From positions 124,001-188,000 of IMG/VR virus record IMGVR_UViG_3300014720_000001: DNA of 64,000 nucleotides, one strand, 5' to 3'. Position 1 is the first letter of the stretch; the number at the start of each line of letters is the position of its first letter. Under the pieces are notes generated by a model. The model saw nothing but the letters and a program-made list of their open reading frames with translations, ran no database searches and was not told the origin of the DNA. Below, in pieces: positions 36,350 to 52,835 of the stretch. The translations under genes and the position numbers were made by a program.

Positions 36350-37729
36350 TTACTTCTGCGCTGCGCGAGCACGAGCCCGCGCCAGAATATCAGCAGAGTC
36401 GCGCTTTGCGGGCCCAGCCTGCGCCATTGACGGCGGAGCGGGCGGCGCTGGCGGAGCCGAAGCAAAGATATCAGCAACGCTGGCATCTACCTCCGGCGAA
36501 ACTTCAGCCTCCGGCTGCGGGTCCCACGGAGCCGGCGGATCAGCCTTTGGCGCCGATCGCTGCCCGTTCGTCGTCAGCGGGCGCTGACGCGGCGCGGGAG
36601 GAGGAGGAGTCTCCAGATCCTCTACCGGCGTCTCTACGCCCTGAAACGTCGACGTGCCCTTCGGCAGTGCCCGGAGGTACTGCGGGAAGTCACGCCACGC
36701 GTAATCCAGCGCTTCACGCGGAAACACGGGAGCCAGCATCTCAGCCTGCTCCTCGTAGGTCGGCAGCCGCAGGTAATCTTCCCACGTGCCGGCCTCCGAC
36801 ACAATCCGATCCGCGTACGGCTCCAGCGAAAGCTCCTGACCGTTAAACGTGTCATGGAGAATACCAAAGTGTGTGTACTCGCTGCGCGAGTGCGGATACC
36901 CAACGATGTACTGCGTGCCCTGCGGTCCGCGAGCAAACTTCGGGCACTGGAACGTCGTCGGACCTTCCAGACCTGTCGCGATCAAGTTAGCGCTGCCGCT
37001 CTTGAACGCTTCGGGCAGAATCGTAAACAGCTTCGCCGGCCCAAGGGACAGCATATCGCCGCTCAGGTACTCACCGGTGCTTTCGTCGCGGACATTCAAC
37101 GCCGCGTGCAGCGCCTCTGCCGCGCTGGTCTTCAGCCCGATGATCCGCGCGTTACGCTTGGAATCGTCGGAGAAAGCGCCCAGCACGATCTTTCCGTGCT
37201 CGTCAACATAGACCGCTGTGGCTGAAATAAACAGCGTCTTTTCCGGCTTCTTAAGCGAGCCGACGTGAGAGCTGCGGACAAACTCCTTCGACAGCAGGTC
37301 CGAAAACAGTCGCCCCAGTGTCGGGTGCGGGTTGTCCTTAGAGCTGTCATAGGCAACCTTGCGCAGAACGTGCAGCGGGCTCTCGTACAGATTCACGTCG
37401 GGGTTACCGTCGTGAATGATGTAGCAGATGCCCGGATTGCCGACCCAGTGCGCGCACGTCAGCAAACGACTCCAGTCGCCCATGGCAACGTTGTCGTGCC
37501 CTTCGCGGAAGCTGGCAAACGTTTCACCGTTTTTGCCCTCCTCGTAGATGGGAAGCAGCCGAAGGCAAAGGCCGTTTCCGAGGAGTTCACCGCCTGCCGC
37601 AATCAGAACGTTATTCTGCTTGCCGTAGGCGTATCGGCTCTTGTTATTCGAGCCGCCGGTACCGATGTTGTTAGCTTTACGGTACTCAGGATCAATCGCC
37701 GCAAAATTAGCCGCGTTATAGCGTGGCAT
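36350..37729 (-). CDS. Probable ssDNA-binding protein (gp32-like)
   Basis: LRLLP motif, position between polA and recA, long Pro/acidic disordered C-terminus. Confidence 0.45.
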   Translation of the reverse strand: MPRYNAANFAAIDPEYRKANNIGTGGSNNKSRYAYGKQNNVLIAAGGELLGNGLCLRLLPIYEEGKNGETFASFREGHDNVAMGDWSRLLTCAHWVGNPGICYIIHDGNPDVNLYESPLHVLRKVAYDSSKDNPHPTLGRLFSDLLSKEFVRSSHVGSLKKPEKTLFISATAVYVDEHGKIVLGAFSDDSKRNARIIGLKTSAAEALHAALNVRDESTGEYLSGDMLSLGPAKLFTILPEAFKSGSANLIATGLEGPTTFQCPKFARGPQGTQYIVGYPHSRSEYTHFGILHDTFNGQELSLEPYADRIVSEAGTWEDYLRLPTYEEQAEMLAPVFPREALDYAWRDFPQYLRALPKGTSTFQGVETPVEDLETPPPPAPRQRPLTTNGQRSAPKADPPAPWDPQPEAEVSPEVDASVADIFASAPPAPPAPPSMAQAGPAKRDSADILARARARAAQK

Positions 37730-37773: not shown

Positions 37774-37809
37774 TGTCTGCAACTATAGCAGACAAAACCA
37801 GTCTGTCTA
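37774..37809 (-). promoter_or_regulatory. Sigma70-like promoter with the -10 element inside an inverted repeat
   Basis: TAGACA-N16-TATAGT with extended TG; TGTCTGC/GCAGACA arms flank the -10. Confidence 0.5.
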
Positions 37810-40800
37810 GCCCTTCTCATCGCAAAACCAATCGATCCCCAAACCCCTAGATTTCGCGGGTTTTAGGTTCTCTCCCCAGTGGAAAAACACGTCGCGACTC
37901 ATGCCGAAATGGTATGGCCCGGCGTTCTCAATCTTGGTGCCGTCCAACCTATGCGGCCAGAACGGTACCCCAGTTACCATGCACTCTGGAATAACTTCTT
38001 TGTAAACGCGCTCGGCGTGCTCTAGCGGCACAATTAACACAATCGCGTCATGGATCTGCAGCGCGATTTTGTAATCAATATCCGAGTGCTCTTCGCGATA
38101 CTTGTAGAAGTTGTAAAGCGCAATCGACACGGCGTCAGCTACTCCGCCTTGAATTGGGAAGTTCTGCGCCTGTCGCTCCTGCTCGCCACGTACAGCGCGG
38201 TCCTTGGTGGGCATGAACCGGCGGAAGCGGCCGTACGGACCAACTAACCAGCCCGGGTCTTGAGACCGCATACGGCACTCTGCCAGAAATGACTTCGTGC
38301 CGGGATAAGACTGAAAGTAGGCGTCAATCATCGCTTGGCACTGATCGGCCGTGACGTCGTGACCTTCCTCTTTGCACTGGCGCGCAAGAGCTTCTGAGCC
38401 GCGGCCGTACGGAATGCCGAAGTTCACGTTTTTGGCTGCAACCCGAAGACCCTTTACACCAGCGTCGGCCATACCCTGTTTTGTGGGCGTGACGCCGCTG
38501 AGCCGGAAGGTCTTAACCGCCTGCTGACTGTGGATGTCGTAGTGATCCGGGTGATCCTCTGGCAGAAGATTACGCCGGACGTGCTCGATCATATTTTTAT
38601 CTTGGCTCAACCACGCGAGGACCGCCAGTTCCGCACCAGTGAGGTCGGTTTCGATACCAACGCAGCCCTTGGGTACACGAAGGATCGAGCGCACGGGATG
38701 CTGGTATCGGTCCTTTCCGAGAATGCGCTTGTAGTCGTCTTCTCGGCGGGAACTGAGGTTCTGCAAAGGAGGTCGGCTGCTGCTGGCTCGGCCTGTTTCC
38801 TTCGTCTGAAACATGTGAGTACGGACCTTACCGTCGGTGTGGACACAGCCGACAAGACCTTTCTCATACGTGTAATTACCGTTCTCATCGAGTTCGTATT
38901 CTCCGTCGTCTGTTTCAGAAGGTTTACGCAACACGGACTGCAGCACCTGACTGATAAATTTGTAGTCACGGATTTTCGCTGCGGTCGAGTTAATGTGGCC
39001 AAGGATGCCCAGACTTTCTTTGTCCGTGCTGGGTGTCACGGTGTCAGCGTTCAGCCCGCGGTACGTCAACTCGTTCCACAGCACGGGGCGCTTGCCGGTT
39101 GTTTTAACCGGCCGCAGATCAAGCGTCTGCGCCGCCTCTGGGATCGTCGGCGAGTTTGTATACCGGTCAGCGAAATCCCGGCCAAACAGCGCAATGGCGA
39201 GCTGCGGCTGCGACTTGGGATTAAACTCTGGCCACTGCAGTTCTTCGCGAATCTCGGCCAGTAGTTGCTCCTGCGTGTTCATAAACAGCGTGGTCAACTC
39301 GTCCGCGCGATTGCGGTCGATTTCAAGGCCAGTCATTTCCATCTCTAGAAACGCCAGCGACGCGTTATGGGCGGTCCAGTACGGCAGCCAGCAGTCGTGG
39401 CCTGTGCCGGACCGCGCGATAATTCCGTCTTTGCCGTTGGTGCCGTAAAAACGCATCATGATGCGGCGCGTAACGTCGACGTCATACGAGGCGTACGGAT
39501 GGAGCACGTGCGCCGGACACTCGCCGTACCCGCCGACTTCACTGGCTTTCAATTTGTTATCAGTACGATACTTTTTCTTCCAGTGGTCGAGCGGTTCCCA
39601 ATAGGTCGGCGCCGCCGTAAACCGCATAGAGCATTCGTCGAGCCCGTAGCGCGCGCACTCGTTCACGGCGTGATACATCAGGCTCGTGTCCCAGCCGCCG
39701 TGCGTGCGGTCGTCCGGGTCTTCGGCGGGCGCATACTCCGGCCGAACGTCCACACCGAAATCAACGAGCCACGGCAAGTCAGCGCGGAAGAAGTGCCCGC
39801 CAACGCGGACATGACGATCAGGCGTGCTTTTCAGCAGACGAATCATTTGCTGGCGAGCCGCGTTCAGATTTGGCTGGAACGCTTCCGCGCCGCCTTGGTG
39901 CCGCAGAACTATTGTTCGGGCCCACTTGTCTTTATTTGATATCTGAACCGTCCGCAGATACGCGCCGTCTTCCGTCGGATAGTCGCCGTGCCACTCACAA
40001 TCGATGGCGATGATATTGGCGTTCGGGTCCGGGTCGGCGAGCATGGCGTCCACGACTTCCGCTAGCGCCTCTTCGGTATAGATATCAGCGTGGTCAACCG
40101 CTTCTTCGTCCAGCAGTTCGTCGTGAATAAGCGCTTTGAACCGCCGGATCTGCCCGACAAAATCTTCTGTTGCTTCAGGCTTGCGCACGACAAATGCCGG
40201 GTGCATCACCGACATGGCTTTCATAGTGCGAGTGTTGCCGTCCGCGTCGGGCGCTGAGATATCTAAAATCCGCCCGGCTAATCCCGTCACCGCGGCGTTG
40301 GTACGCATCACCGCTTTTATGGCCTCGTTGCCGAGACACAAAATAAACTCGGGCTGGACGATGCGGATTTCCTGCTCCAGCAAAATCGCGCAGTTCTTGA
40401 TCCACGCGGCCGGTACAGCCGTGATTTCAAACGGCGCGGCAAACTTACACGCAAACGTGACGTACCAGCTTTCGTACATCTCGGGCGGAATACCGCACTC
40501 TTCGAAGATCTCGGCCAGCGCGGTCATGGCTGGACCGGCCGTGGCGTTCAAGCTTTCCATCTCGTAGTAGCCGGGCAGTTTGCCGACGACCATCACCCGC
40601 GCTTTGTGCCACGGGCCGTATGTCTCGACGGCGGCTGATTTTTTGCCCCAGATATGGCCGGGCAAAAACGAAACCGGAATCAGCTCTTTTGACGACTTGT
40701 GCGAGATTGGCAGGTGAAAGTCCGGCCGGTAAAGCGCATTGCGATACAAGTTCGTCAAGTGCGTCCCAACCGGCACGCTCTTCTTTTTCTTCGCGCTCGC

Positions 40801-40974
40801 TTCATCAATTTCATCGCCCAGCACCACTGCGTGCGCAATGAAGTCTGGGCCGGCTGGCGGCATACCCGGATCCGTAAGCGGAATGAACGGGTATGCCGCA
40901 GCCGTAAAGTCTTCTGTATTCGGATCGTACAGCGTCTGCGTCAGACGGTGCGTAAGCGAAATACCCTGTGCCAT
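37807..40974 (-). CDS. polA: Family A DNA polymerase with N-terminal family-4 UDG-like domain and 3'-5' exonuclease
   Basis: UDG-like VMVVGKLPG...LEQEIRIVQPEFILCLGNEA...HPA; Exo DCE and YASYD; Pol TGRASS..P.LQN, DLTGAEL, RVAAKNVNFGIPYG, QIHDA. Confidence 0.93.
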   Translation of the reverse strand: MAQGISLTHRLTQTLYDPNTEDFTAAAYPFIPLTDPGMPPAGPDFIAHAVVLGDEIDEASAKKKKSVPVGTHLTNLYRNALYRPDFHLPISHKSSKELIPVSFLPGHIWGKKSAAVETYGPWHKARVMVVGKLPGYYEMESLNATAGPAMTALAEIFEECGIPPEMYESWYVTFACKFAAPFEITAVPAAWIKNCAILLEQEIRIVQPEFILCLGNEAIKAVMRTNAAVTGLAGRILDISAPDADGNTRTMKAMSVMHPAFVVRKPEATEDFVGQIRRFKALIHDELLDEEAVDHADIYTEEALAEVVDAMLADPDPNANIIAIDCEWHGDYPTEDGAYLRTVQISNKDKWARTIVLRHQGGAEAFQPNLNAARQQMIRLLKSTPDRHVRVGGHFFRADLPWLVDFGVDVRPEYAPAEDPDDRTHGGWDTSLMYHAVNECARYGLDECSMRFTAAPTYWEPLDHWKKKYRTDNKLKASEVGGYGECPAHVLHPYASYDVDVTRRIMMRFYGTNGKDGIIARSGTGHDCWLPYWTAHNASLAFLEMEMTGLEIDRNRADELTTLFMNTQEQLLAEIREELQWPEFNPKSQPQLAIALFGRDFADRYTNSPTIPEAAQTLDLRPVKTTGKRPVLWNELTYRGLNADTVTPSTDKESLGILGHINSTAAKIRDYKFISQVLQSVLRKPSETDDGEYELDENGNYTYEKGLVGCVHTDGKVRTHMFQTKETGRASSSRPPLQNLSSRREDDYKRILGKDRYQHPVRSILRVPKGCVGIETDLTGAELAVLAWLSQDKNMIEHVRRNLLPEDHPDHYDIHSQQAVKTFRLSGVTPTKQGMADAGVKGLRVAAKNVNFGIPYGRGSEALARQCKEEGHDVTADQCQAMIDAYFQSYPGTKSFLAECRMRSQDPGWLVGPYGRFRRFMPTKDRAVRGEQERQAQNFPIQGGVADAVSIALYNFYKYREEHSDIDYKIALQIHDAIVLIVPLEHAERVYKEVIPECMVTGVPFWPHRLDGTKIENAGPYHFGMSRDVFFHWGENLKPAKSRGLGIDWFCDEKG

Positions 40975-40980: not shown

Positions 40981-42048
40981 TCACAACAAAAACGAAAGAT
41001 CTGCCGAAACATCCACAGCATCTGCGGACGCCGACAACATTTCAAATAACTCAGACCGGGAGTAGTCAGCTGGATCACGATCATCGGGCAAGATGACCGG
41101 CACAACATTAACGTTCCGCTGGCAAAGAGCCGACACGACCTGCTCTAGCTCTGTCTGCGCGTCGTGGTCGAGCACAACGAACACAGGCTTATTTGCCCAT
41201 GTCGTTGCGATCGTGTTGCACTGCCACGCTGACAACGTCTTACCAAAAATGCAGACGCCGGCAACCCCTAGCCGCCAAACGCTCGGCACGCCCTCGACCA
41301 CGACGGCAACCGGCTGCGTAGCCGCGTTGTCGTAGTTGTAAAGAACCTGACTTTTGCGCATGCCGTTGTAGTACTTGACGGTCATCTTGCTGTTGCCAAC
41401 AACGCGACCCTGCCAGCCGACCAACTGCCCGTGAAAATGAACCGGAATGTAAATACGGCCGTGCATAATCCGATGCTTGTCCAGCCGCGGATTTACGCAC
41501 ACGCCGATTTGAAACATTTCGGCTAGCTCGGCGGGGTCAAAACCGCGGCCGGTCAAATAATCAATCGCCGGGTGGTACGCAGGCAACGTAGCAAGCGGAA
41601 GTATCTCTCCCGGCGGTTCAATCGTCTCGTGCGCCGTGTCGAGCGGCACGGAGCGAATTGGTGTCCGCAGCATGAGTCGCCGGCCGGCGCCGAAAACCAT
41701 GTCTTCAAACTGCTCAAGCCGGCCGGGCTTATCGAGACAGTTTTCGTTGTAGCACACCACCAGATGCGTGTTTGCCCGACGACCGTTGCGAATGTCTGCT
41801 CCGTACCGGTGATTTACCCACAGACGACTTCGCTGGTCGCGACAAAACGGACAACACACGCAGTAATACTCACCCCAGTTTCCGCGATACGTAACCTTAC
41901 CGCGGCGGAGTGGATCATCAAATTGTTCGACCTGCGCGGGCACACCTTCGTTTGCGATAGTTACCTCGCCGAACTTGTGCGCGAGCAGACCGTACAGTAC
42001 GGGATTCAGGGGATTTGAACTTGGCGTCTTTGAAACCGCCATTTTCAT
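40981..42048 (-). CDS. dnaG: DnaG-like primase (Zn finger plus TOPRIM)
   Basis: CPFC, GRIYIPV...VGWQGR, KYYN, VVVEG, VLDHDA, DPAD; ATG at 42048 with AGGAG. Confidence 0.85.
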   Translation of the reverse strand: MKMAVSKTPSSNPLNPVLYGLLAHKFGEVTIANEGVPAQVEQFDDPLRRGKVTYRGNWGEYYCVCCPFCRDQRSRLWVNHRYGADIRNGRRANTHLVVCYNENCLDKPGRLEQFEDMVFGAGRRLMLRTPIRSVPLDTAHETIEPPGEILPLATLPAYHPAIDYLTGRGFDPAELAEMFQIGVCVNPRLDKHRIMHGRIYIPVHFHGQLVGWQGRVVGNSKMTVKYYNGMRKSQVLYNYDNAATQPVAVVVEGVPSVWRLGVAGVCIFGKTLSAWQCNTIATTWANKPVFVVLDHDAQTELEQVVSALCQRNVNVVPVILPDDRDPADYSRSELFEMLSASADAVDVSADLSFLL

Positions 42049-42059
42049 ACTGACTCCTC

Positions 42060-43736
42060 TCACGACATCATGTCTTCAGCAAATGTGTCTACCGGAATAA
42101 TACGCCGAACAGCCGAACGCGGACGGGTGAGTGCCGCCGCTTCTTCTGGACTAACCGGCGCGATGTCGCCGCGCTGAATGATGCGCTTGGCGGCTTCAGA
42201 CGCGGTGTACTCGTCGTTTACAAGACGAATCTCGGCAACTTTGTCATCAATCTTGATCAAACCTTTGAGGTTATCTGCCCGAAGGTAACGCAACTTCGAC
42301 CAGTAGATCGTCGAAACATGGCACGCCTCATCGCGCGCATTTACGCAAAGGCACGCGTGCAGATTCTCCGCGAACGACTTTGAACCGGACGCGTCAGCAT
42401 GCGAAACGTACCGATACGGGGGGATGTTTTTAACTTCACCCTGCGCGAGCTGATGCGCCAGCATAATTACAGCGCCCGACGGCACCGCAATCCTCGCCCG
42501 TAACTGGTCAACTGCGTTTTTGATTGGCCGCGCCATCGACTCTGAATACTTCGTCTTGACGTTGGCGTTCATTTCACGCTCAACCATGACGCCGCAATAG
42601 TCGATGGCCACAAACCCAATTTCCATTCCACGCTCGCGGGCCAGTTGCTCCAGCGCCACGACAATCTCCGCCACGCCGCCAGCGCCGCGATTACCGGTCT
42701 TCTCGTTCTGCGAAAAGTCCAGATACATAAAGTTATGATTAAACCACGAAATAGCGGCGACCCAACGCTCGCGTTCACCGAACATGACTTCGCCGTTTCG
42801 ATTGACCGGCAACTCGCGATCGTAGTCTTTAAGGTTGTCAGCGGTCGACAGCTCATTCCAAAAGTCACGCCCGACGGCAAACAACGAACGATCAATTTGC
42901 GCAGCAGCAGACCAGAACGTCGGATTCATCTTTTCGGCCGGATCTTCGTAGCCGATAAATACCGACAGTTTATTGGGCGAGTTTGCGGCATACTGCTGTG
43001 CCATACGGACAGCCGTAACGGCCAGAAGTGTCGTCTTACCGCCGCCATAGGGCCCTAAGACGCCAATAATGTCACCTGCCCGAAAACCTTGCAGGTACTC
43101 GTCAATAAACGGCAGCGTCGTTGGGACCGCGACCGGCGGGAGCGCAATGGGCGATCCGGGCTCAGGCATCATGGCCGCGTTCTCAAACCGCTTGCCCAGT
43201 GCCTCGACCGATTGTGCTTTTCTCGTCCACTGCGCTAACTGCGACTCTAGGTTCTCCGGCGCGCCGCCCAAAGTATTCAGTACGGCCTGCGCCTCGCCTT
43301 TGACCATGCGCTCGCGAATAAACCGGCGAGTGATGTCCTCGATGTAGGACTTCTCGGCGCGAGCTTCGGTTTCGGCCAGCGGAGTAACGCTAAAAGACGC
43401 GTCGACAAAACGGACCAACTCCTCGACCGCGTCGTTACTTAACGGAAGGGCAGAGGTACCGGCGACGGCGCTGTCACGCCACGCCAGTAATCGCGTGTTG
43501 ATCATTTCGGCCGTGAGCGCGCCGAACTGTTCGTACAGTTCTTTCATCGCCGCAAACAGATAGTAAAACGGCAACTCGTCCAGCGTCTGACCGAAATGGC
43601 CGTGTGTAAGCCCAACGCGCAACGAATCACGCAGCAGGGAGGAGTGCTGTAGAAACCCCGAGATCATCGTGCCAATCTCGGACGTTGTCACCGCGTCGAC
43701 TGTCTTTAATTTTTCGTCTATGAACTCACTAGGCAT
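42060..43736 (-). CDS. dnaB: DnaB-like replicative helicase
   Basis: Walker A GPYGGGKTT, IGYED, Walker B VAIDY, AHQL, SKLR; adjacent to primase. Confidence 0.8.
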   Translation of the reverse strand: MPSEFIDEKLKTVDAVTTSEIGTMISGFLQHSSLLRDSLRVGLTHGHFGQTLDELPFYYLFAAMKELYEQFGALTAEMINTRLLAWRDSAVAGTSALPLSNDAVEELVRFVDASFSVTPLAETEARAEKSYIEDITRRFIRERMVKGEAQAVLNTLGGAPENLESQLAQWTRKAQSVEALGKRFENAAMMPEPGSPIALPPVAVPTTLPFIDEYLQGFRAGDIIGVLGPYGGGKTTLLAVTAVRMAQQYAANSPNKLSVFIGYEDPAEKMNPTFWSAAAQIDRSLFAVGRDFWNELSTADNLKDYDRELPVNRNGEVMFGERERWVAAISWFNHNFMYLDFSQNEKTGNRGAGGVAEIVVALEQLARERGMEIGFVAIDYCGVMVEREMNANVKTKYSESMARPIKNAVDQLRARIAVPSGAVIMLAHQLAQGEVKNIPPYRYVSHADASGSKSFAENLHACLCVNARDEACHVSTIYWSKLRYLRADNLKGLIKIDDKVAEIRLVNDEYTASEAAKRIIQRGDIAPVSPEEAAALTRPRSAVRRIIPVDTFAEDMMS

Positions 43737-44496
43737 CGTAATTTCTCCAATACTGCCTTATCTCGACAACGCCGAGTTTAATTTCGTTTTCTATCCACCA
43801 TGCGTATTCTGGATGCGTCGCGATTACGGCGTCATATGACCGCTGCTGCGCTTCGTAATCCAGCGCGGCTTTCCATAAATAACGCTCGACGGCTTTTTCG
43901 CAGTTACGGCGAGAGGCAAACGCGTTTCGAAAAAACGGAGTCGCTGTGACGTAACTTTCGTCGCAGAGTACGTATAGTTCCTGCGTGGCCTCCGGCATTT
44001 TGTATATCGCGGTTGTTGACATTCGTAACTTCAACGTCTCTGCCGCCACGTGAAAACGATCTTTAAGTATCCGCGGCATATGAGTCATGTAGTCGCGGTA
44101 AATCTCGGCTGACTTGGCGCTGTACAAAATCGCTGGGCGCATTTCCGTCAAACGCTGATTGCCGGTCGCAATGCGTTCGGTCGCAATGGCCGAAAAATGC
44201 GCGTATACCCAGCCGCCAAGATCCGCGTCGACACGTTCTGCGGCGCGAAGAATTTTGCCCCAGACAGGCGTGTGTTTTACGCCGTAGGAGTCTTTACCGC
44301 CGTCCCATGACGGCCTACGCCGAGTATGCGTATTTGCGTCCCAGTCGTGGACGCGTTCATTTAGATATATGTACTGGTACCGGATGTAAGCAAGTTTTTG
44401 CTCCGGCGTCAGAAACCTGTACCAGTCAGCTGATAATAGATCTACATCATTCCCCGCTATCTGCTCCGCGGGTTCGCCAAGAGCGCTGCGCGTCAT
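43729..44496 (-). CDS. Hypothetical protein in the replication cluster
   Basis: ATG at 44496 with GGAG; overlaps both helicase genes. Confidence 0.65.
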   Translation of the reverse strand: MTRSALGEPAEQIAGNDVDLLSADWYRFLTPEQKLAYIRYQYIYLNERVHDWDANTHTRRRPSWDGGKDSYGVKHTPVWGKILRAAERVDADLGGWVYAHFSAIATERIATGNQRLTEMRPAILYSAKSAEIYRDYMTHMPRILKDRFHVAAETLKLRMSTTAIYKMPEATQELYVLCDESYVTATPFFRNAFASRRNCEKAVERYLWKAALDYEAQQRSYDAVIATHPEYAWWIENEIKLGVVEIRQYWRNYDA

Positions 44497-45985
44497 GCCA
44501 ATTCTGCTCCCATCCGAGGAGTTTATAGCTGTTTCGTCGCCCCAGACTCTTCCGATAGAAGGTCGGGTCGAACGTGTCCATGCAATCCAATACTTCGCCA
44601 AACTCTTTTCGCGTGCCGTCTGGAGCTGTGTAAATTCGACTTACACGCCCCGGACCCTGCACGTCCACAATATCGCTATCGCGGTCATCGGCGCGGACAA
44701 GAACATTTAGTTGTTCAAAGTCGACACCGGTGGCCCATACGTCCGTGGCGATTACGCGCTTGAGTTGTCCAGCCTCGAACTGAGAACGCATGTCGTACTT
44801 TTGAATGTCTGTGAGCGGCTTGTAGTCGGCGGGCAAAAGGCCCTTTTTCCGATAGCCGGCACAGTCATAAGGCGACATGTTTCCATATACGAGACTGAAA
44901 TCAGGCAATTGCGCGCCGAGATGAACAGCGTGTTCAATCGTCTCTACGAGGATCAGAATTTGGTGAGATTCTGGATATCCCCGCACGGCTTCGGCGATGA
45001 TACGGTTCCGCTCATGGTTTGTCCAGATGCCGTATCGCTTTCGCGCCACACGGTTGTTGTAGCGCTCGGCAGGGTTCGCACGCAGCCGCATGGGAAGCCA
45101 ATTGACTCGCACCGGCACAACCAGCCCAAGCTCGACAGCGTTCTGGTAGGTCAACTCGAATACCATCGGGCCGAACATGGGCTCAAGCACCGCATGAGCG
45201 TTGTCCATTCGGGCGTATGGCGTCGCGCTCAAACCAAAGTTGCGGCTTGTGCGATAGCGGGCGGCTAGCGCCGTAGAGAAATTGATCGTAGCGAGCTGGT
45301 GAACCTCGTCGGCAAACAGGAAGTCTGCATCGCCATCCGAGTGCGCCAAGCTGCCAGCCGTGATCACCGTGACGCGCTCCCACTGTTTCCAGCCGTCGCC
45401 TACGCGGCCCACTTTCGGCAAAAGCCGTTTCAGGCTGCGCACGATACGGTCGGCTACGTCCACGGACTTTGTAACGACGTGGATCTTGGCGGTAGGAAAC
45501 AACAGTGCGGCAGCGCCGATCAGGGTCGTTTTGCCGAACCCGGTGACCGCCTTGATAATTCCGCACGGCACACGAGAGATCGTGCGTAAACATTCTTCCT
45601 GTCGGGCGCGAAACGTAATCCGACCGTCCAGATTCTCCCACTGCGGCGTAAAGCAGTCTGGCCGCTTTCGCTGGCCGGACCGATCTACAAGCAACGTGGG
45701 ACAACCAAGCTTTTTCAGGCGGTTGACCATGCGCGCCAGATATCCGCTCAGCACAACAACATGGCCGTGCTCGACGCGGTATAGCTTGTATTCTTTTGTC
45801 TGAAAGAACATGCGCTGTCCAGTAATCGGATCCCGGCGCGCTTGTCCGTGAACCTGCTCGACGTGAGAGTATCGCAGGTCGTGTGTGAGCCGCTTGATCA
45901 GCTCTTCGTTTAATGGCGCATTGTCTGCGCCGGTCAGCGTTAAAACGTTGCCAACGCGTGTAATTGTTACCGGTTGTGCAAGCAT
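44447..45985 (-). CDS. Superfamily 2 DExH helicase (UvsW/XPB-like)
   Basis: TGFGKT, FADEVH, GLSATP, ATDVWATGVD, QGPGRVSR; start reset to MLAQPV at 45985. Confidence 0.9.
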   Translation of the reverse strand: MLAQPVTITRVGNVLTLTGADNAPLNEELIKRLTHDLRYSHVEQVHGQARRDPITGQRMFFQTKEYKLYRVEHGHVVVLSGYLARMVNRLKKLGCPTLLVDRSGQRKRPDCFTPQWENLDGRITFRARQEECLRTISRVPCGIIKAVTGFGKTTLIGAAALLFPTAKIHVVTKSVDVADRIVRSLKRLLPKVGRVGDGWKQWERVTVITAGSLAHSDGDADFLFADEVHQLATINFSTALAARYRTSRNFGLSATPYARMDNAHAVLEPMFGPMVFELTYQNAVELGLVVPVRVNWLPMRLRANPAERYNNRVARKRYGIWTNHERNRIIAEAVRGYPESHQILILVETIEHAVHLGAQLPDFSLVYGNMSPYDCAGYRKKGLLPADYKPLTDIQKYDMRSQFEAGQLKRVIATDVWATGVDFEQLNVLVRADDRDSDIVDVQGPGRVSRIYTAPDGTRKEFGEVLDCMDTFDPTFYRKSLGRRNSYKLLGWEQNWHDAQRSWRTRGADSGE

Positions 45986-45986
45986 G

Positions 45987-46484
45987 CTATCCGTCGCTTC
46001 CCGGCCCTGAGACGGGTTCGACGGAAAGGACTTCAAATGTCCCATATTTTTCCTGTGCGTTGTTGAACGGGGAAAACCCCCGATACTTCCCGACCAAGGT
46101 GAGTAAATGCACAAAGTCTCCCAGTGAAATCTCCTCCGGAAGCACCGCCGACAATATCACAATGTCGCCGGGGCGAAAAGCCTCGTGCAGCGCGTAGTGG
46201 CTGCGCATCTGATTATCGGCCTGTTGCGTCAAAATCGTGCGGCGCCAGTCGTTTCTGGGCTCGCCCATGACGATTGGGCACCAATCAATTTTTTTGACGT
46301 CGCTGTGGTGCCGGTTGGCGATCTTGGCCGCATACCGCATACACGACAGCCACGCCGACGGCAGAAACATGACACGCTGGCTGGGGTCACGGTCGAAGCA
46401 GAAAATAATCTGTCCGTGCCGCCGCTTTTTGGCGGCTCCGAGGCACACGCGGTTGAACCGGATTTTGATAGTTATTTCCTGCAT
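45987..46484 (-). CDS. RAMP/Cas7-like small protein (putative)
   Basis: ITIKIRF..CLG; FDRD..RVMFLPSAWLSCMRYAA; HEAFRPGDIV; LLTLVGKYRGFS...YGTFEV follow RAMP motif order. Confidence 0.55.
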   Translation of the reverse strand: MQEITIKIRFNRVCLGAAKKRRHGQIIFCFDRDPSQRVMFLPSAWLSCMRYAAKIANRHHSDVKKIDWCPIVMGEPRNDWRRTILTQQADNQMRSHYALHEAFRPGDIVILSAVLPEEISLGDFVHLLTLVGKYRGFSPFNNAQEKYGTFEVLSVEPVSGPGSDG

Positions 46485-46485
46485 G

Positions 46486-47421
46486 TTATTTCTTGCTCAT
46501 ATGCTCCGCGTACGCCGCCCGTTCTGCCGGTGTCTTGAAAAACAAGTTTGGCGCGAACAGCCCGTCTTTTGTGCCGCGTCGATTTTCAATCCCGTCTAGC
46601 CAGTTGTAACGCAGATAGCGCACAAACGCCTGCGACGCTCGAAGATCGCCCTTCGGGCCGCCCTTGGCCGCTTTGTAAATGCGATACAAAAAGTTAGCGG
46701 GATCTTGTAAATCAATTGCGTCTGGTTCCACGGTCTTCCACGTCCGCAAAACATTTGCGCAACGCAGCTCGCGGCCTTTGTGCAGCAAGCGCTTCGGCGT
46801 TGACACGCTTGTTTGTACCTGCGGAGTCAGACCCAGAAACAGCTCCAGCTTAGCCGCACGATCCGGTGACTTACGGTCCACGTACCAGCGCGGATCTACA
46901 ATCGTGGCCAGCAGCTGCGCGGCCACTTCCGCGTCCAACGTCGGAATAAACGTCAGCGCTTTATGTGCCGGGTGCATCCGAAAGTACGCCTGCGCCGCGT
47001 CGTCAAACACAAAGTTTGTCCGCTGCATGCGCCCGAGAATCGCGTACGTCGGGTAATCGTGGACCGAAAGCGCATGCCAGCCGCCCGCAGCCGGCGCTAC
47101 GTCGACACTGCGCATGCGACGCAAAACAATCTGCGGGTCGTCAATATCTTCGGCAGTGTGCAAGACGTTCGGTCCGGCGATCTCAACGCGGTTAATCTCG
47201 TTTTTATGGCGGCGTAAATACAGCGCCGAAATTAACTCGGCGTTTTGCGGCAGCCCAAGTACGCGCACCTGTACGCCAATGCCGTTTAGCACGGGAGACA
47301 GCAGAAACGAATCCAGCAGCTGCTCGGAGTTGGTTGCCGGGCCGATTCCGGTTGAAAACCAAACCCGACCATCCGTATGCGTGTGCAGTTTAATTACTGT
47401 TTCATCAGTTACGCTGTACAT
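46486..47421 (-). CDS. Degenerate IS110-transposase/Nop-domain-like protein
   Basis: LTFIPTLDAEVAAQLLATIVDPRWY...AKLELFLGLTPQVQTS matches the IS110 C-terminal L.sIPGiG...Aa.ll.eigD..rF....l.ayaGL.P...qS pattern; N-terminal half is RuvC-like without the first two acidic residues. Confidence 0.65.
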   Translation of the reverse strand: MYSVTDETVIKLHTHTDGRVWFSTGIGPATNSEQLLDSFLLSPVLNGIGVQVRVLGLPQNAELISALYLRRHKNEINRVEIAGPNVLHTAEDIDDPQIVLRRMRSVDVAPAAGGWHALSVHDYPTYAILGRMQRTNFVFDDAAQAYFRMHPAHKALTFIPTLDAEVAAQLLATIVDPRWYVDRKSPDRAAKLELFLGLTPQVQTSVSTPKRLLHKGRELRCANVLRTWKTVEPDAIDLQDPANFLYRIYKAAKGGPKGDLRASQAFVRYLRYNWLDGIENRRGTKDGLFAPNLFFKTPAERAAYAEHMSKK

Positions 47422-49558
47422 GCCGCAGCTCCGGAGCTTCGAGTTCAATAGCCGATTCAAACAAGTGAGACAGATTAACCGCGTGGGTTACCAGTAAGCA
47501 CTGCAACCCCTTGGCCGTTGACAGCTCGCGCAGCTTTTCTAGCACCGGGGCCAGCGCTTGAATACGCGGCTGATCCAGTGACGCAGTCGGCTCGTCCAGC
47601 GCAAGCAAGCCGATTTCTTCGGCAAACATCGCGTTGACGGCGACGCGAAACGCAAGTGCCAAGACCGTTTTCTGCCCGACAGATAGTCGTTGAGCGACTT
47701 GTCGTCGTCCGTCAAAGAACTCGGCGATAAATGTTGGTGTTCCATCCGTGGCCACCTTGATAACAAAGTTTACACGAAACACCTGCAGCAACTCATTAAT
47801 CGCCGCTTCAAGCCGCTGCAGGTTACGCTGTGCTACGAGCCGCGGCGCATTCTTCAAAGCCTCTCGCGCTGTTTCTGCCAGTCCAGACCAGCGCCGCAGC
47901 TTACCAGCCCGAACTTCCTGCGCTCGCACTTCTGCGCACTGCTCGTCAAACCGCTTCTTCTCGAACAGGATTTGCGCGCGCTGATCCGCCAGCCCCGTGC
48001 GCGTTTTCAGCTGCTCCTGTAACTGCTGCAACTGCGTCTGCGCCAGATGCGCGTCAGCATGTGTGACAGATATCTCAGCCAACTCTTCTTCGAGCTGCTT
48101 CTTGCGGGCCTTGAGCGCTTCGATTGCGCCATTGACCTGCGCCCGTTCTTCCCGAGCTTTCTGAGCCAGCGGTTCAATCTCTTTCTTGACGCGCTGAAAC
48201 TCTTCGTAATCCACGACCGCCTGCTGCAGCTCATCCTCGCTCGATTCTGGCGGCTTTACAGCGAGTAAGTCTTTTTCAGCTGCGTCAAGCTGCTGTTCTT
48301 TCGCTTCGCGCGCTTTCTGTCGCTTTTCCCAATCCTGCCACACGGCCTCTTTGAGTGTCTGACGACTGGCAGCGTTTTTCCACTCCACTAGGTCTTCTTC
48401 CATTTTCACAAGGTCAAGCTTGTACTGCTCAACCTGCGCCGCCAACTGCGACGACGGTGTGTGGCATGTGGGGCATTCGGCGCAACCGTCAGCCGAAAAC
48501 ATATCAATAAATCGTTTGGCGTCTTTGATACGCTGCTCACGCGAGTGCTGATCGCGGCGCATTTCTTCAGCAGTCGGCAAACCCGGCTTTTCAGGCTGCT
48601 GATCTTTCTCGCATTCGGCGGCTAGTTGCGCGCGCGTGGCCTGAAAGTTTTCCTTGGCTTTCGCGACGCTCTTGTAGCTCGCCCAATGCCCGAGCGCGAC
48701 CCGGGCGGCGGCGTGCGCTGATTCCTGCCCGTCAGCCGCCTGCGTCAACGCCAGCAGGTCTGCGTCGTACTGCGCAGAGGAGTTTACAAGCGCTTCCAGT
48801 GCTTGCTGTTGCTGCTCAAGTTGCTTTTCCAGCTTGGACAGCTCCGCCGCGCCACGCTCTCTGGCGTCCCACTGCTGAATTGTCGTCTGGTCGGCCCGCA
48901 TGAGCGCCAGAATGTTATCTGGGTTCGGCAGTTGCGCGATCTGCTCCGCCAGCGCCTGCGCCCGCTTTGCCGCATCATTTGCCTGCGCCTCCAGCTCGTC
49001 AGCGGTATGCACGATCTCTGGAATGCTCAGCTTAGATAGCGACTTGCCAATTACGTCTTGGCACTTGTCAGCCCGCGACGTGTTAAACAGCCGCTGAAAA
49101 AACTTATCAGTGTCAGTTTGGTTGTCGTCAATGAACGAAAAGATCTCAGTCTGCGAGACAATGATAAACCGACTGATAAACTTGGCGTCGACACCCAACA
49201 GCTTCTCGATGCCGGCGGTTACGCTCTTGTCGCCGCGGCCTATTTCTTTGCCATCCACGAGTAGGGTGGACTGCTCTTTCTCCGGCAGTAGGTGCCGTGT
49301 CACAACAGCGATATGCCCGTTATGTTCGAACTCTAGCGTGGCGTACGCAGGTTCACCTTCGCGAGCATATTGCGAAATGTTGTCGGACTTTACGCCAAAA
49401 TTTGGATTCTCGCCGGTGAGCAGCCATCGAATCGCGCCAAACAAGCTGCTCTTGCCAGAACCGTTTTCGCCGAGAATCGCGACTAACCCGCGGGTAAACT
49501 CACACACTCGATAGCGGTGGTGTACCCAATTCTTCACTTCCAGTCGCAAGAGCTGCAT
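47405..49558 (-). CDS. sbcC: SbcC/Rad50 ATPase
   Basis: GENGSGKS, Q-loop, coiled coils with CPTC zinc hook, LSVGQ, LDEPT, VTH. Confidence 0.92.
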   Translation of the reverse strand: MQLLRLEVKNWVHHRYRVCEFTRGLVAILGENGSGKSSLFGAIRWLLTGENPNFGVKSDNISQYAREGEPAYATLEFEHNGHIAVVTRHLLPEKEQSTLLVDGKEIGRGDKSVTAGIEKLLGVDAKFISRFIIVSQTEIFSFIDDNQTDTDKFFQRLFNTSRADKCQDVIGKSLSKLSIPEIVHTADELEAQANDAAKRAQALAEQIAQLPNPDNILALMRADQTTIQQWDARERGAAELSKLEKQLEQQQQALEALVNSSAQYDADLLALTQAADGQESAHAAARVALGHWASYKSVAKAKENFQATRAQLAAECEKDQQPEKPGLPTAEEMRRDQHSREQRIKDAKRFIDMFSADGCAECPTCHTPSSQLAAQVEQYKLDLVKMEEDLVEWKNAASRQTLKEAVWQDWEKRQKAREAKEQQLDAAEKDLLAVKPPESSEDELQQAVVDYEEFQRVKKEIEPLAQKAREERAQVNGAIEALKARKKQLEEELAEISVTHADAHLAQTQLQQLQEQLKTRTGLADQRAQILFEKKRFDEQCAEVRAQEVRAGKLRRWSGLAETAREALKNAPRLVAQRNLQRLEAAINELLQVFRVNFVIKVATDGTPTFIAEFFDGRRQVAQRLSVGQKTVLALAFRVAVNAMFAEEIGLLALDEPTASLDQPRIQALAPVLEKLRELSTAKGLQCLLVTHAVNLSHLFESAIELEAPELRHVQRN

Positions 49559-50681
49559 CGTTAGGTTCTCCCGTCATGTATTTTGAAAACTGTACATCAA
49601 GCTCTTTGGTTGCATCTTCGGCCGCCAACAGTGACGCCGCTAGTTTGTAAGCATCTGTGCCGTCGCCGAGCAGGTCGGCCAGCGCAGACAATAAATCGTT
49701 CTTGGCGCCGTCACGTGTACCAGCGCGCTTGTCGGCGTCGTACTTGTTCGTCAGCGCCTCGCAGAACACGTGCGCCGAATCACCAACTGCCGTGACCAAC
49801 CGGATATACGCGTCGGGCAACCGCTTGTCGAATTTCATGCGCACAATTGGCTTCATGATTTCCAGCGGATGACCAGCCTGCATAGCCTCCGAACGCGCCG
49901 CGCTAATATCTCGAACCAGCCACTCAGCGCAGAGATTGTCGAGCAATTCTTGATCCTCGACGCGGTAGTCGAGAAACCGGCGGGTCTTCAGCGGCACAGG
50001 GCGGAACTCAAAATTGCCCTGCCCGTCGTCATAGATAACAAAAAAGAACTTTGACGGATCTTCGCCGCAGTCCTGCATGCAAATCGAACCCGGCGACAGC
50101 ATCTGAATCGGCTGGCCTTGCGCGTTTGCGGCGGTCACTATCTTGGTCACATGAAAGTCGCCGGCCAGCACGGTCCGGACATGATGCACGTCAAACAGGT
50201 CGCACTCGGTGCGGCCTACGTTGCCCATGAAATCTTTCCAGACCTGATGCACAATCAAGATATCAGTATCTTCCGGCACTTCTTTGAACGCCGTCTGAAT
50301 CTCGCCGCGCGGTAACCAGTCAAGGCCGTACACGCGCACACCGTTGATCGTTACGGTTTGCTTATGGATGTGCCGCGACCACTTATGCACGCTCAACCAC
50401 GGCGCATTGCGGTCGTACTCGTGATTACCCTGAATGTAGTTCACGTCGAGGTTCGCGGCCTGCATGCGGCTCAGCCCGTTACACAACTGCGCAATCGGTC
50501 GAGCTGCGTTGCTTTTCTTCTCCAGCACGTCGCCGCCCAGAATTAACTGCAAGCCGTGATTGATGCAGTAGTCGATGATCTGATTAAAACTGTAATACGC
50601 GTCGCCGTAGATTCCGGGCCGCGTTGACCATGCACCATCTTCAAGGTGCAGGTCAGCGGTAAACACAAAAAGAGGTCTCAC
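49500..50681 (-). CDS. sbcD: SbcD/Mre11 metallophosphoesterase nuclease
   Basis: ADLHL, GGDV, GNHE, VHQ, GDFH, PGS; adjacent to sbcC. Confidence 0.9.
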   Translation of the reverse strand: MRPLFVFTADLHLEDGAWSTRPGIYGDAYYSFNQIIDYCINHGLQLILGGDVLEKKSNAARPIAQLCNGLSRMQAANLDVNYIQGNHEYDRNAPWLSVHKWSRHIHKQTVTINGVRVYGLDWLPRGEIQTAFKEVPEDTDILIVHQVWKDFMGNVGRTECDLFDVHHVRTVLAGDFHVTKIVTAANAQGQPIQMLSPGSICMQDCGEDPSKFFFVIYDDGQGNFEFRPVPLKTRRFLDYRVEDQELLDNLCAEWLVRDISAARSEAMQAGHPLEIMKPIVRMKFDKRLPDAYIRLVTAVGDSAHVFCEALTNKYDADKRAGTRDGAKNDLLSALADLLGDGTDAYKLAASLLAAEDATKELDVQFSKYMTGEPNDAALATGSEELGTPPLSSV

Positions 50682-51622: not shown

Positions 51623-51698
51623 TAGCCGGGGTGAGATTCGAACTCACGGTCCCTAGCTTATGAGGCTAGTGAGGACGACCAGACTCCTCTACCCGGCG
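51623..51698 (-). tRNA. tRNA with CAT anticodon (Met, initiator-like acceptor)
   Basis: Cloverleaf CGCCGGG/CCCGGCT, GAGG/CCTC, CTAGC-CTCATAA-GCTAG, GTGAG-TTCGAAT-CTCAC; CCA not encoded. Confidence 0.9.
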
Positions 51699-52764: not shown

Positions 52765-52835
52765 ATGCCCGACTAGGATTCGAACCTAGACAAAAAGAAT
52801 CAAAATCTCTTGTGCTACCGTTACACCATCGGGCA
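52765..52835 (-). tRNA. tRNA-Gln(TTG)
   Basis: TGCCCGA/TCGGGCA acceptor, GTG/CAC D-stem, AGAGA-TTTTGAT-TCTTT, CTAGG-TTCGAAT-CCTAG; CCA not encoded. Confidence 0.9.

Follow-up and report, generated by a model that had tools for sequence, protein, structure and literature searches.

A minimal RAMP-like protein paired with an SF2 helicase in the replication-recombination operon of freshwater phages: a possible domesticated module

RAMPs (Cas5, Cas6 and Cas7, and now Vipr) and Nop-type proteins (Nop5, IS110 and Tas) are the scaffolds of most multi-subunit RNA-guided systems. VIPR is made up of a phage RAMP (Vipr), an accessory protein (Vap) and a vrRNA of YNNGG repeats (10.64898/2026.04.26.720920, 10.64898/2026.04.26.720927, 10.64898/2026.10.15.759431), the accessory genes of types III–V encoding nucleases or helicases (10.64898/2026.04.26.720920). 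According to the VIPR preprints, the vrRNA genes adjoin vipr and carry 9–16 tandem YNNGG (or other 5-nt) repeats followed by a conserved 3' tail; the repeats can also be non-canonical. TIGR arrays consist either of alternating 8–12-nt repeats with 9-nt spacers or of stem-loop units. TasR proteins with an inactivated RuvC domain, as well as arrayless Tas clades, are known (PMC12045711). In the locus described here, from a lineage of uncultured freshwater phages of ~200 kb, both kinds of scaffold lie side by side, fixed in a replication-recombination operon and with no guide array visible in the window, the whole 64-kb stretch of DNA analysed. The original prediction held that no described system pairs these folds, a statement that no longer stands as worded, since minimal RAMPs of phages, accompanied by accessory genes that in part encode helicases, have now been described as VIPR (10.64898/2026.04.26.720920).

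Table 1. Genes of the locus, with positions in the window, strand and basis of assignment.
Feature	Position	Strand	Basis or remark
sbcD (SbcD/Mre11-like nuclease)	49500-50681	-	Pfam Metallophos; PHROG 100
sbcC (SbcC/Rad50-like ATPase)	47405-49558	-	Pfam SMC_N and AAA_23; PHROG 77
311-aa gene (Tas/IS110-like)	46486-47421	-	Predicted fold and weak family matches
165-aa gene (minimal RAMP)	45987-46484	-	Predicted fold (AF2/Foldseek)
SF2 helicase, 512 aa, XPB/Rad25-like (DEVH)	44447-45985	-	Pfam ResIII and Helicase_C; PHROG 16
ORF of up to 290 aa, function unassigned	43729-44601	-	Between helicase and DnaB; syntenic in relatives
DnaB	42060-43736	-	Label of the original prediction; Pfam families of L066 and L068 orthologues
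Primase	40981-42063	-	Label of the original prediction; Pfam families of L066 and L068 orthologues
UDG-PolA fusion	37807-40974	-	Label of the original prediction; Pfam families of L066 and L068 orthologues

The genes follow one another with very little space between them (Table 1). Read base by base, the sbcC stop codon (TGA, 47405-47407) and the ATG of the 311-aa gene at 47421 produce a 17-nt overlap, the 311-aa and 165-aa genes meet at 'TAA c ATG' with a 1-nt gap at 46485, and the 165-aa and helicase genes meet at 'TAG c ATG' with a 1-nt gap at 45986; the gene order, overlap and two gaps originally predicted are all exact. Judging from the sequence, translation of the helicase is coupled to that of the RAMP. 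Over 37-53.5 kb, sites resembling promoters or terminators do not depart from background frequency, and a UvsX-like recombinase is encoded near the module. The 290-aa ORF has no family match in Pfam, PHROGs, NCBIfam or PADLOC, and its real start probably lies inside the called frame; in distant loci its slot is filled by a gene of 181-233 aa which overlaps the helicase by only 4-22 nt (L066, L068).

The order sbcD-sbcC-(311)-165-helicase-x-DnaB-primase-PolA is found again in ~60 contigs of related viruses and, at 24-38% protein identity, in distant loci, so that the arrangement is not due to chance and the linkage that had been proposed extends well beyond this genome. In every distant locus with a readable downstream gene the RAMP and helicase genes are adjacent, and the pair always stands after SbcC and before DnaB, primase and PolA. 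The 311-aa gene, on the other hand, does not occur between the sbcC and RAMP genes of L066, L070, L072-L074 and L077. Of the three-part unit originally envisaged, the RAMP and helicase are therefore the invariant core, while the IS110/Tas-like gene, absent from several branches, is dispensable. The RAMP and helicase are also the best conserved genes of the cluster, above DnaB and primase (RAMP 64%, helicase 76%, DnaB 40%, primase 51% and SbcC 53% identity in L015; 69%, 76%, 38%, 54% and 54%, respectively, in L039), with the RAMP and 311-aa proteins being conserved as well as the polymerase and more than DnaB. Phage contigs are nearly the sole carriers of the RAMP family, the only match among 185,579 species genomes being one MAG contig. 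The module is also represented by short metatranscriptome contigs from relatives, which may stem from carried-over DNA. The helicase itself carries Pfam ResIII and Helicase_C domains and matches PHROG 16 (DNA helicase, E 1e-28), with XPBII as its PDB match (E 1.6e-7); in three relatives (L013, L014, L019) an intein with a LAGLIDADG endonuclease sits inside its Walker A/P-loop.

The 165-aa protein models confidently as a minimal, stand-alone RAMP of Cas7/Vipr type (AF2 pLDDT 85), as its sequence layout had suggested. It recalls what we take to be RAMP motifs, namely an N-terminal beta-strand followed by Gly, LPSAWL before helix 1 and a C-terminal G-rich loop. Searched against the PDB with Foldseek, the model gives 66 matches at E<=0.001 (best E 2e-5), of which the best 50 are all CRISPR effector chains (Csm, Cmr, type VII, I-B Cascade and Cas7-11-type), although TM-scores to Cas7 structures reach only ~0.5 with an RMSD of 8-9 Å. 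The ESM Atlas structure search places the nearest cluster of the family beside PF03787 RAMP, Csb2 and Cas5d clusters, the model of that cluster matching the PF03787 RAMP cluster with a TM of 0.74. The modelled architecture comprises one RRM, a beta-hairpin at residues 81-99, which is read as the thumb, and the C-terminal glycine-rich loop GKYRGFSPF...YGTFEV. Across the family, which forms 223 clusters at 50% identity, F10, L15-G16, R82, H100-E101, G132, G136, S138-P139, G148 and F150 are near-invariant, and the most conserved segment is this RAMP-typical G-loop. The protein has no Pfam, PHROG or PADLOC match.

The 311-aa protein (AF2 pLDDT 91) is modelled with an N-terminal beta-beta-beta-alpha-beta-alpha-beta domain of RNase H/RuvC-like strand order, for which the ESM Atlas yields no meaningful match, and a helical, Nop/Transposase_20-like C-terminal domain. 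Its best PDB fold match is the IS110 bridge recombinase ISCro4 (9t56_A; Foldseek prob 0.87, E 0.076, TM 0.35). NCBIfam matches residues 139-218 to IS110 (E 0.006) and TIGR_Tas_endo (E 0.027), the latter model (NF052498) being matched over the same residues by 9 of 14 diverse family members with a best E of 1e-4, all far under the cut-off (14-20 bits vs 100). Pfam reaches only Transposase_20 at E 0.043, PHROGs and PADLOC give no match, and the ESM Atlas feature neighbours carry PF02371. These matches, concordant and each sub-threshold, place the protein only remotely in the IS110/Tas/Nop lineage, which agrees with the assignment first made by motif. Invariant residues of the family include GGWH, DPRWYVD and KLxxxxGLxP. 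Its alignment holds no DEDD set and no invariant Ser, and with distant members added, residues 1-120 retain no invariant acidic position; Ser207 after GLTP, equated with the IS110 catalytic serine by motif alignment, is not kept in the L020 and L021 members. The protein thus appears catalytically dead, as had been proposed.

No guide array was found in the window, in line with what had been noted by eye. Explicit scans gave no run of at least 4 YNNGG units, no 6/9 NNNGG window and no 5-nt periodicity, and TRF and repeat scans gave no TIGR (18/36-nt) or CRISPR-type array; the canonical VIPR array at L047:316-830, used as a positive control, was detected. The window also contains a coding repeat at 1.6-3.4 kb, outside which no 16-60-nt periodicity was seen. 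As the window is part of a contig of 204.6 kb, a guide array may exist in the other ~141 kb. Pfam, NCBIfam and PADLOC detect no further Cas or defence family among the four module proteins, nor any Cas5, Cas6, Cas8, Cas11 or adaptation protein. The only true VIPR island among the relatives, that of L047, lies outside the replication operon.

Taken together, the locus is best read, tentatively and at a little short of an even chance, as a conserved accessory module of the recombination-dependent replication operon and not as a stand-alone defence or interference cassette. This reading follows from the gene coupling, deep synteny and high conservation of the RAMP and helicase, from the intein in the helicase P-loop, the nearby UvsX-like recombinase and the lack of an array in the window, from the sporadic occurrence of the VIPR island (L047 only) and the confinement of the family to phage contigs, and from the background frequency of promoter- and terminator-like sites over the operon. 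Since the module behaves like core genes, the alternative already raised in the original prediction, that of domesticated factors, is favoured over its guide-RNA ribonucleoprotein, at least regarding programmability. This suggests a role in replication or recombination for folds otherwise known from RNA-guided immunity. Mechanistically, the RAMP, like Cas7 and Vipr, would polymerise on a single strand, more probably the RNA of an R-loop or a phage transcript but possibly SbcCD-resected ssDNA, and the filament would mark or stabilise the intermediate. The adjacent helicase may then remodel it by R-loop or D-loop unwinding or branch migration, with handover to DnaB, primase, PolA or the nearby UvsX-like recombinase. 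The Tas-like protein could serve as a dimeric scaffold or as a clamp on nucleic acid, comparable to the non-catalytic Nop5, and the module proteins would presumably interact physically. To our knowledge every RAMP characterised to date binds a dedicated guide RNA, which counts against this reading. The bolder proposal, in which a RAMP filament, an XPB-like helicase and a dead Tas/Nop-type scaffold take part in replication initiation or recombination throughout the phage lineage, is a long shot. For example, R-loops held or built on promoter-driven GG-periodic or purine-rich transcripts, of a type predicted upstream of the RAMP gene in relatives without the 311-aa gene, might prime or restart DNA synthesis.

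Such transcripts also bear on a second explanation, unlikely but a serious contender, in which the locus is a genuine RNA-guided system of VIPR type, possibly a helicase type and perhaps with a Tas-type guide binder, whose guide genes lie outside the window or are written in an unrecognised repeat code, and by which competing phages or satellites would be silenced or attacked, or particular DNA sites targeted. Relatives lacking the 311-aa gene have in its place, immediately before the RAMP gene, a promoter and a GG-periodic leader, a candidate RNA partner predicted from sequence, with a tract of 9 units of 8-9 nt in L066 and ~6 units of 7 nt in L077, as well as a hairpin with an (A/G)UGGAG loop. 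Position and layout match those of a single upstream vrRNA, and non-canonical repeats are possible in VIPR; however, the L066 repeats are 8-9 nt instead of 5 and nearly invariant, with CAACGAGG three times identical, so carrying little guide information, and the z-scores for leader folding do not stand out (-0.5 to -1.1). The protein evidence is similarly divided. The RAMP has a G-loop and a hairpin in the thumb position, VIPR is itself phage-borne with nuclease or helicase accessory genes in types III–V, and the TIGR-Tas model is matched by most of the 311-aa family members examined. The family profile touches SUSP1 Vipr (PDB 36pp_D) in the G-loop only (E 0.073), whereas hhalign against the bona fide Vipr of L047 gives a probability of just 30%, again over the G-loop only, and HMMER aligns a proline with Vipr D177, the residue which reads G1 of GGY. 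Neither a 5-nt-periodic nor a TIGR-like array appears in the window with scans that do find the L047 array, and a gene with a fixed operon place, present universally and strongly conserved, does not resemble a conflict system.

Rather unlikely is an RNA-free role in DNA handling, with the RAMP as an ssDNA-binding or mediator protein (the gp32/UvsY role) on SbcCD-resected ends and the 311-aa protein as a DNA-binding scaffold of helix-hairpin-helix type for SbcCD or the helicase. The genes come directly after those of SbcCD, the proteins are small, highly conserved and probably abundant, the window is free of arrays, and no SSB or UvsY-type mediator is recognised among the window proteins scanned, yet a UvsX-like recombinase is present; this absence means little, however, because most window proteins are unannotatable. 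An RNA ligand is hinted at instead by the promoter-driven leader that precedes the RAMP gene in some relatives, and no RAMP is known to us to act on ssDNA by itself. Incidental likeness, with ferredoxin-like/RRM and helical folds of a generic kind and proteins of unrelated roles, for instance as SbcC-helicase adaptors, is improbable: the poor family matches of both proteins, the modest Cas7 and ISCro4 superpositions and the Atlas result for the 311-aa N-terminal domain would fit it, but the best 50 PDB matches listed are CRISPR effector chains and not other RRM proteins, the independent Atlas search leads to RAMP clusters, the RAMP-typical G-loop is the best conserved segment and four independent methods send the 311-aa protein to the same IS110/Tas domain.

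Should the favoured reading be correct and the module act on replication or recombination intermediates, it would contain the first RAMP with a housekeeping role and offer an accessible experimental clue to what RAMPs did before, or do beside, programmable targeting. If R-loops are involved, RAMPs, and perhaps Nop-type guide binders, would have had or gained a housekeeping role in viral DNA replication, bearing on the proposed descent of CRISPR RAMPs from phage proteins. If a hidden guide is used, a VIPR-like system wired into the replisome and coupled to a Tas-like protein would be new too. In any case the RAMP-helicase pair is a well-defined and easily expressed target.

Among known systems, the recombination-replication modules of T4 and T5 (gp46/47 or D12/D13 with UvsW or D10) likewise place Mre11/Rad50-type nuclease genes next to an SF2 helicase and the replisome and include a UvsX-like recombinase, but the helicase here is closest to XPB, and neither a RAMP nor a Nop-domain protein is known to us from those modules. 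IS110 elements (IS621, ISCro4) provide the best whole-chain fold match of the 311-aa protein (ISCro4), whose 'IPT...LLATIVDPRWY...KLELFLGLTP' parallels the IS110 Transposase_20 motif 'IPGIG...GD..RF...GL.P'. In contrast to IS110, the DEDD tetrad is lacking, distant members do not retain the serine that follows GLTP, the gene has no element ends, bridge RNA region or flanking non-coding DNA, and it shows no mobility, its position being fixed in all relatives that carry it. With TIGR-Tas, whose Tas proteins are common in phages, and in particular with TasR of inactivated RuvC, the 311-aa protein shares a RuvC-like N-terminal domain devoid of catalytic residues, which precedes a domain remotely resembling the Nop type. 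Its gene has no array of dual repeats or stem-loop units beside it, the overlap and 1-nt gap on its two sides leaving no intergenic space, and its place in a replication operon, coupled to SbcC and a RAMP, is an association unmentioned in PMC12045711.

Class 1 CRISPR Cas7 proteins (Csm3, Cmr4, type VII Cas7, Csf2) are the best structural matches of the 165-aa model, and a helicase encoded beside the RAMP recalls the SF2 helicases Cas3 and DinG (type IV). Unlike in those systems, the module has no CRISPR array and no partner Cas proteins, the 165-aa protein is ~50 residues shorter than Csm3 and the helicase is XPB-like and not of Cas3 or DinG type. VIPR differs in being a sporadic island, whereas the RAMP gene here holds the same place in the replication operon of all relatives, and in its YNNGG or other 5-nt repeat RNA, which the window lacks; SUSP1 Vipr has 202 aa, the model of the present 165-aa protein shows no helical bundle, and proline stands opposite the guanine-reading Asp of the Vipr G-loop. 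What the two have in common is a phage-borne, stand-alone, single-RRM RAMP of ~20 kDa that has a G-loop and, in the thumb position, a hairpin, weak sequence likeness in that G-loop, the absence of CRISPR arrays and other cas genes, and a small operon with a putative DNA-acting accessory gene, here the SF2 helicase. As some VIPR types have helicase accessory genes, the RAMP-helicase pair might already be one of them.

The predicted feature exists, has clear limits and is unusual. The window corresponds to roughly positions 124,001-188,000 of the 204,621-bp IMG/VR contig IMGVR_UViG_3300014720_000001, a compact genome (52-63% GC) whose genes in the window are nearly all on the minus strand. The genes for a 311-aa and a 165-aa protein, followed by an SF2 helicase gene, stand behind sbcD and sbcC and ahead of a replication cluster (see table). 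Open reading frames and base-level reading of the junctions reproduced exactly the gene order, strand and tight coupling of the original prediction: the sbcC stop codon (47405-47407) lies inside the 311-aa gene, which begins with ATG at 47421, giving a 17-nt overlap, and single-nucleotide spacers occur at 46485 ('TAA c ATG') and 45986 ('TAG c ATG'). Promoter-like and terminator-like sites between 37 and 53.5 kb are at background frequency only, which fits one long operon; the sole intergenic sigma-70-like site of this interval (51736-51708) is upstream of tRNA-Met. In its longest version the 290-aa ORF shares 155 nt with the 3' end of the helicase gene (44447-44601), and its true start is probably internal, for example a Met at about 44496, because distant relatives overlap the helicase by just 4-22 nt.

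Features of the window locus and of leaders in relatives lacking the 311-aa gene
Feature	Coordinates	Strand	Basis or remark
sbcD	49500-50681	-	ORF
sbcC	47405-49558	-	ORF
311-aa gene	46486-47421	-	ORF
165-aa gene	45987-46484	-	ORF
SF2 helicase, 512 aa	44447-45985	-	ORF
ORF up to 290 aa	43729-44601	-	longest frame, TTG start at 44601
DnaB	42060-43736	-	ORF
primase	40981-42063	-	ORF
UDG-PolA fusion	37807-40974	-	ORF
tRNA-Met(CAT)	51623-51698	-	Rfam; upstream of operon
tRNA-Gln(TTG)	52765-52835	-	Rfam; upstream of operon
SbcC-RAMP gap leader	L066:2031-2241; L072:1204-1407; L074:282-514; L077:129-316		190-235 nt

Searches of 50,697 deposited phage genomes by tblastn and megablast returned no relatives of the window at nucleotide or protein level and no cultured-phage relatives of the 165-aa protein, the 311-aa protein or the whole locus; the helicase has remote matches alone (27% identity or less). 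A collection of 185,579 species genomes holds one contig with the 165-aa family, in a MAG (92% identity), and this contig is probably phage. A locus scan with alignment A7 gave four loci in metagenomes and none in viral contigs. Elsewhere in the window, 60393-60932 (-) encodes a 179-aa protein whose N-terminal part bears a SEC-C zinc-binding motif (PF02810, E 9e-9).

Related viral and metagenomic contigs, whose loci are numbered L012 to L079, allow the conserved part of the cluster to be defined. About 60 related viral contigs, many of which measure 190-205 kb, share exactly the order g207 (the gene upstream of sbcD)-sbcD-sbcC-311-165-helicase-290-DnaB-primase-PolA, and two 224-kb contigs (L020, L021) keep it at 28-38% identity. 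Within the cluster, conservation is highest for the RAMP, as the 165-aa protein is classed below, and for the helicase: identities in L015 are 64% and 76%, respectively, against 55% for sbcD, 53% for sbcC, 52% for the 311-aa protein, 41% for the 290-aa protein, 40% for DnaB, 51% for primase and 64% for PolA, with the same ranking in L039. At distant loci of the RAMP family, an orthologous helicase directly follows the RAMP gene wherever the downstream side is readable, and SbcC precedes it, with or without the 311-aa gene, wherever the upstream side is. L020, L021, L068/69 and L079 have the 311-aa gene, the L068 version being homologous in the C-terminal 190 residues only (hhalign, 97% probability); in L066, L070, L072/73, L074 and L077 no copy stands between SbcC and the RAMP gene. 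Since the helicase is adjacent at every readable locus while the 311-aa gene is absent from several, RAMP plus helicase form the invariant unit and the 311-aa gene is an addition found in some branches. The linkage of the proposed three-gene system is conserved, but its core is narrower than proposed. In L012 (8927-10019) and L013 (8915-10657), the 311-aa and 165-aa genes are separated by an insertion of 1.1-1.7 kb, so that they are not invariably adjacent. The insertion holds three ORFs without a Pfam match, which in L013 encode 189, 270 and 120 aa.

The 165-aa protein is a RAMP, as its layout had suggested. It has no match in Pfam, PHROGs or PADLOC, and Pfam gave scattered chance matches only across all 60 diverse members of the family. 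Its AlphaFold2 model, built from 58 homologues (pLDDT 85, pTM 0.79), presents a ferredoxin-like core, a loop preceding the last strand and a beta-hairpin at residues 81-99, which we read in the model as a putative thumb. Foldseek returned 66 PDB matches at E<=0.001 (best E 2e-5, TM about 0.5), and the best 50 of these are without exception chains of CRISPR effectors (type III-A Csm, Cmr-beta, type VII, I-B CAST Cascade and Cas7-11-type). In the ESM Atlas, the model of the family's nearest cluster aligned with a PF03787 RAMP cluster (TM 0.74 over 157 residues), Csb2 and Cas5d clusters coming next. In an exhaustive HMMER search the family comprised 223 clusters at 50% identity, all of them free-standing proteins with lengths of about 110-260 aa. 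Among 60 members with identities as low as 23%, the nearly invariant residues are F10, L15-G16, R82, H100-E101 ('HEAF'), G106 and P116, together with a C-terminal G-loop (G132..G136-x-S138-P139..G148-x-F150). It is at this G-loop that the family profile found its one, weak match among PDB sequences, the SUSP1 Vipr protein (36pp_D, E 0.073), Vipr being the RAMP of the phage system VIPR.

The 311-aa protein is more remote from known families, and the full protein has no match in Pfam, PHROGs or PADLOC. Its AlphaFold2 model (pLDDT 91) has an N-terminal beta-beta-beta-alpha-beta-alpha-beta arrangement, in the strand order of RNase H/RuvC, and a helical C-terminal half. Among whole-chain PDB folds it resembles most closely that of ISCro4, an IS110 bridge recombinase (9t56_A, prob 0.87, E 0.076), followed at low probability by RuvC-like resolvases (MOC1) and Prp31. 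NCBIfam placed IS110 transposase (E 0.006) and TIGR_Tas_endo (E 0.027) on residues 139-218, the latter model also being matched independently by 9 of 14 diverse family members (best E 1e-4); the excised domain matched Pfam Transposase_20 (E 0.043), and among its 100 nearest feature neighbours in the ESM Atlas 75 come from the PF02371 set. These five lines, each weak, all point the same way, to a remote Tas/IS110-type protein, in agreement with the IS110/Nop lineage first proposed from motifs. Other searches were empty: the PDB by sequence profile had no match to the whole family or the C-terminal domain, a BFVD fold search with the model gave nothing meaningful, and a second profile search of a large protein database found just the family itself among the best 120 matches listed.

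The same protein had been suggested to be nuclease-dead, and the alignment bears this out. Once the members from L020 and L021 (about 30% identity) are included, the N-terminal domain contains no invariant acidic residue and Ser207, after 'GLTP', is not conserved, and therefore the residues expected for IS110 catalysis are not retained; from its sequence, the protein is predicted to be catalytically dead. A similar situation is found in TasR with an inactivated RuvC domain, or Nop5 (PMC12045711). The invariant residues are instead F39, R53, G56, N60, A61, GGWH (113-116), DPRW (176-179), K191-L192, G197-L198-x-P200, R220, W228, R247, L260-R261-A262 and W274-L275. The label RuvC-like for the N-terminal domain is tentative, because the ESM Atlas gave chance-level matches only for residues 1-125; DUF4123, one such match, was rejected for this region. 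Holliday-junction resolvase identity was likewise discarded, there being no conserved acidic residues.

The helicase contains ResIII and Helicase_C domains with a DEVH box, matches PHROG 16 and has archaeal XPBII and XPB/Rad25 as its nearest solved relatives (E 1.6e-7). An in-frame intein of about 375 aa with a LAGLIDADG homing-endonuclease domain (PF14528, E 7e-10) splits its Walker A motif (GFGK / insert / TTLIGA) in L013 (10943-13702), L014 (9335-11998) and, at the same position, L019. Inteins tend to occupy conserved sites of important enzymes.

Taken together, the observations favour a domesticated core module, accessory to replication and recombination. This reading rests on the unchanging place in the operon, the coupled translation with SbcC and the helicase, universal presence and strong conservation, as well as on the helicase intein, the absence of arrays from the window and the catalytic loss predicted for the Tas-like protein. 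It suggests a housekeeping rather than a programmable role. A UvsX/RecA-like recombinase (34896-36311, -; phrog_97, E 1.4e-29) is encoded nearby, two genes downstream of PolA, and between the two lies the gene for a 459-aa protein (36350-37729, -) with no detectable family. Of about 20 neighbouring window proteins scanned, none could be recognised as an SSB, UvsY/mediator, clamp or ligase. We infer that the RAMP would coat a single strand, either the RNA of an R-loop or transcript or resected ssDNA, that the helicase would remodel the coated intermediate and that the Tas-like protein would serve as a non-catalytic scaffold.

A VIPR- or TIGR-like guided system, with its RNA encoded outside the window, is a rather unlikely alternative. 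That no guide array is visible in the 64-kb window, as originally stated, was upheld by low-stringency Tandem Repeats Finder, by Rfam (tRNA-Met and tRNA-Gln only), by scans for YNNGG, NNNGG and YNNNG runs, by single-base periodicity at periods 4-7 and by lag autocorrelation over 4-60 nt. The sole exception is a coding repeat in multiples of 9 nt at 1.6-3.4 kb, within a 786-aa ORF (1371-3731, -) that shows strong 9/18/27/45/54-nt periodicity and lies where the window is richest in GC (0.63); it is a coding peptide repeat rather than an RNA array, possibly of a fibre-like protein. The region 34,054-34,895, intergenic at first sight, reads as small minus-strand genes. The scans were validated on L047 (IMGVR_UViG_3300022752_005685), where they detected a textbook VIPR island (235-1897) 1.2 kb upstream of g207-sbcD, comprising a tRNA, six vrRNA-like YNNGG-repeat units (316-830), a small ORF with weak HNH similarity (834-1196) and a 234-aa Vipr (E 1.5e-25 to SUSP1 Vipr, 36pp_D). 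The island occurs in L047 alone, being absent from the window and the other relatives fetched. Its array was rejected as a guide for the 165-aa family, since the gene it accompanies is a different one, a bona fide Vipr, with which that family aligns at 30% probability (hhalign) in the G-loop region only.

A candidate RNA partner is offered by relatives without the 311-aa gene. The SbcC-RAMP gap of L066, L072/73, L074 and L077 carries a near-consensus sigma-70 promoter (TTGACA-17-TACACT in L066, TTGACA-17-TAGACT in L077), while L070, which also lacks the gene, has no such gap. The promoter is followed in L066 by nine units of 8-9 nt, (N)NAAC[GA]AGG (TRF score 63-96), in L077 by about six 7-nt units each ending in GG, and in L072 and L074 by purine-rich, only loosely periodic tracts. 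Next comes a hairpin whose stems differ and whose loop is (A/G)UGGAG in all four (L066, L072, L074, L077); a second adjoins the Shine-Dalgarno site, and L072 has an additional terminator-like hairpin. The layout of promoter, repeat tract, structured tail and RAMP gene recalls the single upstream vrRNA of VIPR; however, the repeats lack a period of 5, those of L066 hardly vary and the folding z-scores are ordinary (-0.5 to -1.1). The leader could equally be a vrRNA-like non-coding RNA, an R-loop-prone origin transcript or a regulatory 5' UTR.

This genome is not present in any public RNA run. Freshwater metatranscriptome assemblies hold short contigs of relatives (150-570 nt, 80-96% identity) covering helicase, RAMP, 311-aa gene, sbcC and sbcD, one of them spanning the sbcC/311-aa junction; these may be DNA carry-over, and transcription is not thereby demonstrated.

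RNA-free roles, SSB- or mediator-like, are unlikely. That the fold similarity is incidental, despite the CRISPR effector chains matched by the RAMP model, is highly improbable.

Among known systems VIPR is the closest precedent, a published cousin of the module. Its minimal phage RAMPs polymerise on vrRNAs of 9-16 YNNGG repeats and silence competing elements, their dsDNA recognition involving a one-nucleotide skip (10.64898/2026.04.26.720920, 10.64898/2026.04.26.720927); seven types are defined, of which types III-V carry nuclease or helicase accessory genes (10.64898/2026.04.26.720920), and divergent 5-mer codes are found. The view that no system pairing these proteins had been described needs qualifying: neither a RAMP-Nop pairing nor a replisome context is mentioned in the TIGR-Tas, IS110-Nop or VIPR papers searched, but VIPR comes close. 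The 165-aa RAMP shares with it the general design and a helicase neighbour, the helicase-bearing types being compared by description only. Unlike in VIPR, no vrRNA was found in the 64-kb window, and the G-loop Asp with which SUSP1 Vipr reads G1 aligns with a proline (HMMER alignment). Furthermore, VIPR is an accessory island, whereas the 165-aa RAMP behaves as a core gene.
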